A stretch of 64,000 nucleotides of DNA from Rebecca billardiae RCC1528 (Eukaryota > Protista > Haptophyta), in the NCBI GenBank assembly GCA_965240325.2, contig OZ251233.1, positions 1,860,001-1,924,000 on the forward strand, written 5' to 3'. A program made the position numbers and the translations under genes. The notes beneath the pieces were generated by a model. The model made no database searches. It was not told the DNA's origin and was given only the letters and a program-made list of their open reading frames with translations. The first letter of the stretch is position 1. Each line of letters begins with the position of its first letter. Positions 42,648 to 44,391 of the stretch are shown one piece after another.

Positions 42648-44391
42648 GTGGGGTTATTGGTACAATAACTGATTGTCTAAGAGGACGACAAGAACGCCGG
42701 GCGCCAGCGCCGCTCATCAGCCACATCGCCCTCTACCAGACCATCGCCTCAAAGGGCGCTGCTCCCGGACAAACAGTCTGTCCGGGTTGTTCTGCCGCCC
42801 AGGAGATCGATTTCCGGCGCCGGCCTCTGCCGCCTGCTTCGCCAGGCGCGGCGTGCGAGATGGCTCCAGCCAAGCTCGTCCTGCGTCGCCGGCGGCGGCG
42901 GCTCGCACGCGGGTGGCGCGTCGCGTGCACCGACCAACATCTTTCGGCAACTCGGCGGTAAGCAACGCTCCGCATCGCGCCCCCTCGCGCTTCGGGCCAC
43001 CGCCTCTTCTCTCTCTGTGTGCGTGCGCACCCTGTGGCTCTTCCGCACCCGCCCCGATCGCACCGTTCCCTCTTCGCCACATGCCTCCTCCTCCGTGGGT
43101 GCGCCCCCACGCGGATCGCTGCTCCATCTCTCCCGCCCTGCCTCGGGATCGCCCCGGTGCCAACGCCAGCCGGCTCCTACACAAGGACCGCTGGCGGCAC
43201 ACCGCGCGCCGGGCCCCGTGCGCACCCGCGGGCCATTCACAGCATCCGCAAAGGCCGTCTAGCCTTCTCCTGCTTCCGCAGCGCCGCGCCTCGGGGCCGG
43301 CTGCCTGCTATCTCTCCTATTCGGGTTCCGTCTCACTCGCACTGCCCCACCTGCCCAGCCCCCGCTGGCCGGCCCTCGTGCGTGCGCGACTCACACGTGC
43401 CTTGCCCCCTTTCCTTCCCATCACTCAATGGGATTCTCCTCCACGCGGTGCTCCCCAACACACCATGAAACGGGATCACTCACGCACCGCGTCTCGTCGA
43501 CGGCGAGCGGCATGCCCACCGCATCTGCTGCCGCTCGCCAAGGCATGAGGACACGTAAATCCCACTGAGTAGGAACACACGCAGCCGCCTCGGCATCGAC
43601 ATGCCAGGCGGCGTGCCCACCTTCGGCCAGCAGTTGGCGTCGGCGTTCACGAGGACGGCTAGACGTGGGGTTATTGGTACAATAACTGATTGTCTAAGAG
43701 GACGACAAGAACGCCGGGCGCCAGCGCCGCTCATCAGCCACATCGCCCTCTACCAGACCATCGCCTCAAAGGGCGCTGCTCCCGGACAAACAGTCTGTCC
43801 GGGTTGTTCTGCCGCCCAGGAGATCGATTTCCGGCGCCGGCCTCTGCCGCCTGCTTCGCCAGGCGCGGCGTGCGAGATGGCTCCAGCCAAGCTCGTCCTG
43901 CGTCGCCGGCGGCGGCGGCTCGCACGCGGGTGGCGCGTCGCGTGCACCGACCAACATCTTTCGGCAACCCGCCCACCCAGGGCCCGTTGGTCTGGTGCTC
44001 GGGCGGCGGGATCACAACACCCGCCGTCCGACCGCCCGGTCTTGCGGCGCTGCACTTAGGGCTCATGTGACCCCCTGCCTCCCAACACGATTGGGTTTTT
44101 CAGGTTAGGTCCCCAGCAGTGCTGCTCCCGGGCGGTCAGGTGGAGGTTCAGTCGACGAGTCCGCAGGCGCTCAGCCTTCCGTCAGCGGACGTCCGCGCGG
44201 GATCACTCACGCACCGCGTCTCGTCGACGGCGAGCGGCATGCCCACCGCATCTGCTGCCGCTCGCCAAGGCATGAGGACACGTAAATCCCACTGAGTAGG
44301 AACACACGCAGCCGCCTCGGCATCGACATGCCAGGCGGCGTGCCCACCTTCGGCCAGCAGTTGGCGTCGGCGTTCACGAGGACGGCTAGAC
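42648..44391. mobile_element. 1,744-bp TA-inserted element with split direct repeats A1-x-B1A2-y-B2 (PAT/TOC1-like layout), non-coding
   Basis: A = 304 bp (42648-42951, 43665-43968) and B = 194 bp (43471-43664, 44198-44391); the copies appear identical. Internal junction TAGAC|GTGGG. Flanked by (TA)n. Confidence 0.85.

Follow-up and report, generated by a model that had tools for sequence, protein, structure and literature searches.

Closest described systems

The repeat order A1-B1-A2-B2 defines the PAT, Ngaro and VIPER retrotransposons, which encode a tyrosine recombinase (YR) (PMC4157794, PMC6681497), and SIRE of Trypanosoma cruzi, which corresponds to the A2-B2 part of VIPER, is a published precedent for a solo A2-B2 unit (PMC6681497). 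[quoted passage not shown] For integration in the DIRS order, no experiments have addressed the specificity of the recombinase; the model requires a circle of double-stranded DNA, whereas DIRS-1 makes single-stranded, mostly linear cDNA (PMC7192593). From the same work, this extrachromosomal cDNA appears to be the first strand, antisense to the mRNA.

As of 2016, recombination of a folded strand was known only for integron cassettes and the CTX phage (PMC4792948). In the attP(+) site of CTX, two inverted simple sites fold into a mimic of a duplex that lacks extrahelical bases, and one strand is exchanged by XerC (PMC4792948). The attC sites of integrons have paired arms around an unpaired central spacer, a purine skew on one strand, an apex of the GAA type, extrahelical bases and 7-bp RYYYAAC/GTTRRRY boxes; cleavage occurs between A and C, within the R box, which is paired (PMC5027507). 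Among rolling-circle elements, Helitron2 starts with a 5' T, has a hairpin at each end and carries asymmetric terminal inverted repeats of 8-15 bp, whose distance to the 5' end is 0-2 bp and to the 3' end 20-30 bp (PMC3627910). A junction hairpin, or a comparison with attC, was not found for DIRS-order elements in the literature searched, to which subscription reviews (e.g. Poulter and Goodwin) did not belong.

Three elements sharing the same type of ends

Three elements with the junction hairpin described below, named E1, E2 and E3 and perhaps belonging to two independent lineages, are present in the window, i.e. the whole 64-kb stretch of DNA that was analysed (Table 1). The largest one, E2, has two pairs of direct, not inverted, repeats that are 99.7% (A) and 100% (B) identical in self-comparison, and B1 directly abuts A2, so that the internal B1-A2 junction is equivalent to the joined ends of the element. 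E1 and E3 comprise one interior between a left and a right end, nothing more, and their ends are as in E2. Their interiors and the X and Y segments of E2 are all mutually unrelated.

Table 1. Coordinates of the elements, of the junction hairpin of E2 and of the surrounding (TA)n tracts in the window
Feature	Position	Strand	Remark
(TA)n target tract left of E1	42333-42394		
E1, 239-bp A-B unit, sister family	42395-42633	+	A ~42395-42566, B ~42565-42633
(TA)n between E1 and E2	42634-42647		
E2, non-coding split-direct-repeat element A1-X-B1-A2-Y-B2	42648-44391	+	between T and A of (TA)n
E2 repeat A1, ~307 bp	42648-42954	+	differs from A2 at a single base, 3 bp before its end
E2 interior X, 516 bp	42955-43470	+	unique, C-rich, unrelated to Y
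E2 repeat B1, 194 bp	43471-43664	+	identical to B2
Distal GC-rich stem	43636-43648 x 43709-43722	+	shuffle p 0.0085-0.017
Purine-rich zone flanking the outer stem	43651-43656 facing 43700-43705	+	tandem G-A within in-register C-G pairs
Core two-storey hairpin at the B1-A2 junction of E2	43660-43696	+	breakpoint between 43664 and 43665
Outer stem, 5 bp	43660-43664 x 43692-43696	+	E2 junction
Spacers, 5x5	43665-43669 and 43687-43691	+	E2 junction
Inner stem, 7 bp	43670-43676 x 43680-43686	+	E2 junction
Loop GTA	43677-43679	+	E2 junction
E2 repeat A2, 307 bp	43665-43971	+	
E2 spacer Y, 226 bp	43972-44197	+	unique
E2 repeat B2	44198-44391	+	
(TA)n target tract right of E2	44392-44527		
(TA)n left of E3	54968-54978		
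E3, 703-bp A-B unit	54979-55681	+	in common with E2: ~40 nt of left end, 15 nt of right end
(TA)n right of E3	55682-55695		

By its layout E2 appears to be a split-direct-repeat YR retroelement of the PAT/TOC1/Ngaro kind, and a non-autonomous one because recognisable coding capacity is absent. It resembles the DIRS-order elements PAT, TOC1, Kangaroo, Ngaro and VIPER in the succession A1-interior-B1-A2-spacer-B2 with near-identical repeats and in the internal end-to-start junction, whereas none of the copies E1-E3 carries gag, RT, RNase H or YR genes. A target duplication is not visible in these known elements, nor in E1-E3, where (TA)n would hide one. A placement among the DIRS1-like elements was rejected, the repeats being direct and the 3-bp overlap of that group contrasting with the lack of any overlap base here. 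E1 and E3 would represent solo A-B units similar to SIRE, in which a left repeat, a little spacer and a right repeat also follow one another (PMC6681497), although a hairpin has not been reported for SIRE. The B-A junction of the VIPER element of Bodo saltans is different, forming, as judged by eye, a single imperfect hairpin. Within interior X, an 8-nt inverted copy of the right end of E2 (GTCTAGCC) occurs at 43257-43264, which may be due to chance or be a trace of an internal complementary region.

Geometry of the junction hairpin

The preliminary description of this DNA reported a hairpin with two stems separated by a 5x5 spacer and closed by a 3-nt loop, with the breakpoint at the edge of the spacer. 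The letters of the E2 junction hold to this in every part (Table 1): both stems are perfect, extrahelical bases are absent, and the breakpoint is the exact edge between the outer stem and the spacer. The same geometry was recovered, as had been stated, from the sequences of E1 and E3 when their ends are joined, including an 8-bp inner stem in the virtual junction of E1, with one T-A to A-T swap and one extra G-C pair, and a loop that is always GNA (GAA in E1, GTA in E2 and GCA in E3). The spacer had been called unpaired, and is indeed mismatched over 5x5 positions, but it is partly pairable on the + strand, where G-T wobbles are possible at its edges.

The arm pattern has a single occurrence in the window and is missing from all dinucleotide shuffles (0/100). 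When the window was searched for the 5-5-7 geometry irrespective of sequence, the E2 junction, TA runs and one site in the arm of a foldback transposon were obtained, and nothing else. A comparison with Rfam gave no match above noise, the noise being TA runs alone.

For the isolated core of 37-39 nt, the predicted probability of the outer stem is 0.93-0.94 at 37 C, and in E1 and E3 this stem is predicted to form in longer context too. When the E2 junction is placed in a frame of 60 nt (that of the preliminary description) or 100 nt, its inner stem persists in the minimum-energy fold predicted for DNA, but the outer arm takes other partners. The same ten arm pairs occur in all three elements, and because they never vary the core arms give no covariation signal; the covariation of the core amounts in total to one double change and one added pair over n=3 elements.

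Such invariant arm bases are also what protein-binding motifs would show, as in a scenario where the same YR retroelement uses its junction as double-stranded DNA. Of two inverted cores in the junction, TAGAC-5-GTTAT and ATAAC-5-GTCTA, one would be catalytic and the other accessory. The hairpin would then be a by-product of a classical integration from a double-stranded circle, the mismatched overlap being resolved afterwards. The predicted minimum-energy fold of E2, without the outer stem, agrees with this, as does the standing DIRS model, which uses a double-stranded circle (PMC7192593). We nevertheless consider it unlikely, for it leaves unexplained the compensated apex, the conserved GNA loop, the tandem G-A pairs and the distal stems, as well as the 2-bp change in the distance between the two sites; moreover, of two possible outcomes just one is observed.

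Extension of the fold and strand asymmetry

In the models the fold extends beyond the 37-nt core, with tandem G-A pairs and a third stem whose sequence has diverged. The tandem G-A pairs, enclosed by in-register Watson-Crick pairs, are present in 3/3 elements, and distal stems equivalent to that of E2, with a different sequence, are found in E1 and E3. In each of the three elements, pairing of the B arm with the A arm of that element exceeds its pairing with shuffled arms (p 0.0085, 0.014 and 0.017), and the whole rod likewise exceeds arm shuffles (p 0.014, 0.034 and 0.028). The arms of E1 pair with each other far better than with those of E2 or E3, and the B arm of E3 pairs with the A arm of E2 as well as with its own. 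The effect of the distal stem is modest, since 2.5-18% of the 30-mers of the window pair equally well.

The GNA loop, the G-T spacer edges and the tandem G-A pairs exist on the + strand only; on the minus strand of the junction the loop becomes TNC and the G-A pairs are lost. Predicted energies for the + and minus strands of the three elements are -21.8/-19.4, -17.2/-17.2 and -17.2/-13.9 kcal/mol as DNA, and -43.0/-38.7, -34.7/-28.2 and -36.0/-23.6 as RNA. In these models the folding strand is the + strand, and the energies do not separate DNA from RNA. By analogy with known elements it is probably the sense strand. The folding strand may therefore be RNA, being probably sense, whereas the extrachromosomal cDNA of DIRS-1 is taken to be first-strand.

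This raises the alternative that in the same retroelement the fold acts on the transcript or on nascent cDNA, as a packaging signal, an RT pause, or a primer or template-switch signal defining the ends, while integration is conventional. The longer interior precedes the B-A junction as in known elements, in line with a sense + strand, and the rod is predicted as RNA with the outer stem formed in 3/3 elements; moreover, a hairpin has been proposed to prime the RT of DIRS-1 (PMC7192593). Neither the position of the breakpoint at the exact edge of the stem nor the fit of the arms to the (TA)n register is explained in this way, and there was no Rfam match above noise. GNA triloops, besides, are generally known as a stable loop of the DNA type. 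On balance this alternative seems improbable.

The terminal hairpin also invites a comparison with rolling-circle (HUH) elements such as Helitron2 or Replitrons, where the hairpin and the asymmetric repeat would serve as signals for origin and terminator, and E2 would be a dimer with its two units joined head to tail. In FoHeli1/2, the 5' hairpins are closed by GAA loops and insertion takes place between T and A (PMC5148889). Helitron2/FoHeli elements share with E1-E3 an asymmetric end repeat combined with a terminal hairpin, GAA loops and T^A insertion, and they form circles of joined ends (PMC3627910, PMC5148889). It is typical of such elements to occur as simple A-B units whose junctions are seamless and whose interiors are unrelated, and the arrangement on the minus strand fits in position. 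By contrast, the asymmetric repeat has here 5 bp instead of 8-15 and the element starts with G, not T; by eye, the minus strand has no 5' hairpin and the plus strand no 3' asymmetric repeat, and the second terminal hairpin is missing. The change of the loop to TNC and the loss of the G-A pairs on the minus strand also weigh against this origin, and the two units of E2, near-identical in A and B with unrelated interiors, fit better with split direct repeats. No RepHel-coding partner was seen in the window. Strict membership in Helitron2 was rejected on the 5-bp repeat, the G...C ends and the one terminal hairpin seen by eye, and a rolling-circle origin in the broader sense appears quite unlikely.

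Insertion into (TA)n

All three insertions lie between T and A of (TA)n. On either side of the breakpoint the junction and the target have different bases, and an overlap base is therefore absent. The TAGAC and ATAAC arms match (TA)n at 3/5 and 3/5 positions with an odd spacer, and these matches drop to 3/5 and 1/5 with an even one. The 5-nt spacer is on the left end in 3/3 insertions, which corresponds to the top-strand outcome, and the alternative outcome is absent from the window; the loose ends listed in two public runs (X1 and X3) also show the top-strand outcome. After a double-strand exchange lacking overlap homology, either the left end or the right end would be expected to keep the spacer, and a count of 3/3 for the same outcome is statistically weak.

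A target duplication is invisible inside (TA)n, the site of all insertions, and no empty site was recovered. A Logan contig carrying the gene beside E3 (L010) parts from the window at 54966, immediately ahead of the TA run, where 49 unrelated letters take over (L010 1-49). It was rejected as a clean empty site on account of these letters; the departure could reflect another allele, another insertion or a chimera. The protein neighbouring E3 matched one Logan and one ENA short contig, and no others.

A duplication, either TA or 5-bp, hidden in the microsatellite would be compatible with a DDE-type element (solo LTR or MITE) having TG...CA ends, since the addition of one flanking base per side gives TGT...ACA. 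These flanking bases are missing from the internal junction, which fixes the ends as G...C and led us to reject DDE/LTR ends; the terminal inverted repeat is also at most 2 bp long and the layout is not LTR-interior-LTR, making such an origin very improbable.

A possible mechanism of integration

The best model remains, tentatively, a one-strand exchange catalysed by a YR between the folded + strand and (TA)n. For these small (TA)n-targeting elements, the junction hairpin suggests that a recombinase inserts a folded single strand of DNA, as in integrons and the cholera phage. The strand asymmetry, the absent overlap base, the single type of outcome and the fit of the arms to (TA)n are consistent with a folded single-strand substrate, and the link to a YR is supported indirectly, by the A1-B1-A2-B2 layout.

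From the layout, ends, target and foldability of the elements we infer a partner enzyme, a fold at the DNA level and the chemistry of the exchange. E2 would be copied in trans by an autonomous partner located elsewhere in the genome, and its B-A junction would be the attachment site. The + strand is predicted to fold back so that TAGAC/GTCTA and GTTAT/ATAAC become two short duplex arms, which, by surrounding the mismatched 5-nt overlap, would mimic a double-stranded recombination site. When a tyrosine recombinase cuts, a 3' phosphotyrosine stays on the bound arm and the 5'-OH is freed into the overlap. This geometry is found for the + strand alone, with a cut at TAGAC^GTGG, and the fold favours the same strand. 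A cut between C and G would thus keep the 3' phosphotyrosine on the stem side and free the 5'-OH into the spacer, after which the single strand could be exchanged with T^A of the (TA)n duplex, and replication or repair would finish the insertion. By inspection, pairing beside the cut would be minimal: the freed GTG could form G-T, T-A and G-T pairs with the other strand of the target, and the incoming A could find a partner in the last T of the lower spacer, which is invariant. This would account for the choice of (TA)n as target without any base in common.

The CTX phage is said, from the work of Val in 2005 and Das in 2010, to be cut at the edge of a mismatched overlap, with minimal pairing to its target. 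If the one-strand model holds, its attP would be a closer model for the junction than attC: in both, two inverted sites fold into a duplex mimic free of extrahelical bases. The differences are that CTX is a bacterial phage relying on the host XerCD and dif, whereas E1-E3 have arms of 5-8 bp, a microsatellite as target and an enzyme that is presumably encoded by an element. The attC sites share with the junction the paired arms around a central spacer, the purine skew of one strand and the GAA-type apex, but the E2 junction has neither extrahelical bases nor 7-bp RYYYAAC boxes. Strict attC membership was rejected, the breakpoint being C^G at the stem-spacer edge. The analogy drawn in the preliminary description with both attC and CTX attP is therefore retained for the latter and not for the cut and extrahelical bases of attC. 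Its proposal of integration through a folded single-stranded junction gains from the layout, the strand asymmetry and the (TA)n fit, while a recombinase, a free circle and the DNA-level fold were not seen.

Several points count against a one-strand exchange: the competing fold hides the outer stem in E2, an arm of 5 bp is short for a YR half-site, the folding strand, being probably sense, may be RNA, the ten arm pairs are invariant over three elements, the distal stem is modest, and three insertions with one outcome are few. In addition, the scans described below gave no recombinase or RT in the window and no relative among viral, metagenome and bacterial sequences. By layout the element is of a known kind; the junction feature is real, and the mechanism is plausible, directly testable and unproven. 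A eukaryotic retrotransposon lineage may, with somewhat less than an even chance, integrate by a one-strand YR exchange of a folded single-stranded junction with a (TA)n duplex, the target being selected through arm mimicry and wobble pairing. If true, the integron/CTX pathway would have its first counterpart in eukaryotes, and the recombinase of DIRS-order elements a concrete substrate; a folded junction would also reconcile the single-stranded, mostly linear cDNA of DIRS-1 with the double-stranded-circle model. With the junction, a 37-nt substrate, its strand and cut position and a target become available for tests with oligonucleotides.

Search for an enzyme and for related sequences

Long copies encoding a YR, an RT or an HUH endonuclease, envisaged in the preliminary description, were not seen in the window. 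No recombinase or RT was identified by Pfam among ten ORFs, a set that excludes those listed in 1-31500, and a crude search for motifs in the six frames of the window likewise found none. DNA-pattern scans of viral contigs gave five chance matches, none with the hairpin, and those of metagenomes nine matches, of which 0 had a paired inner stem or split repeats, pointing to chance. In bacterial genomes, pattern scans gave 0 and then four matches, two without inner pairing and two that are plain perfect hairpins. The latter, in a Coriobacteriaceae genome bin (L017 4992-5028) and a Shewanella genome (L019 2842-2879), are perfect palindromes of 37-38 nt with the same arm letters, and were treated as unrelated, their spacers being fully paired.

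In public data, relatives of E1 were found in two runs from different studies; none of the runs is registered as RNA. Run X1 contains an 861-nt contig made of the left part of E1, about 630 further letters and the right part of E1. Run X2 contains a 151-nt contig in which 42589-42633 is followed by 42406-42500 with 11 letters between them; these equal 42395-42405 in length, the comparison being by length with the segment masked. The end-to-start junction of E1 thus probably exists as real DNA. The preliminary description had suggested mining of reads for such a junction; the E1-family contig is compatible alike with a genomic internal junction, a tandem or a circle.

Neighbouring features of the window

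E1 and E2 sit in the TA tract at the right end of a gag-like element located on the minus strand at 31861-42332. This element is bounded by TA runs, with a CCHC knuckle near the end of the ORF at 32104-33903, and has TGTCA...TGACA ends. The leftmost 104 bp of the element recur at 42023-42126, and it resembles an LTR element of which one LTR has been shortened. Its gag-like ORF is interrupted by a foldback element (33751-41092), whose inverted arms are long and which contains a 214-bp unit arranged in two inverted arrays; CATCAGG is present on both sides. On the + strand, an ORF of 4368 aa at 13911-27017 includes about 6 kb of low-complexity repeats with periods of 12, 75 and 300 nt. Ordinary eukaryotic genes with REJ, SET and TFIID-18kDa domains are present at 46699-51744, 58413-60377 and 62643-63743. 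Tandem duplications of 104 bp and 315 bp were observed at 29048-29248 and 56795-57433, respectively, and the segment 29498-29557 is similar to 56682-56743.
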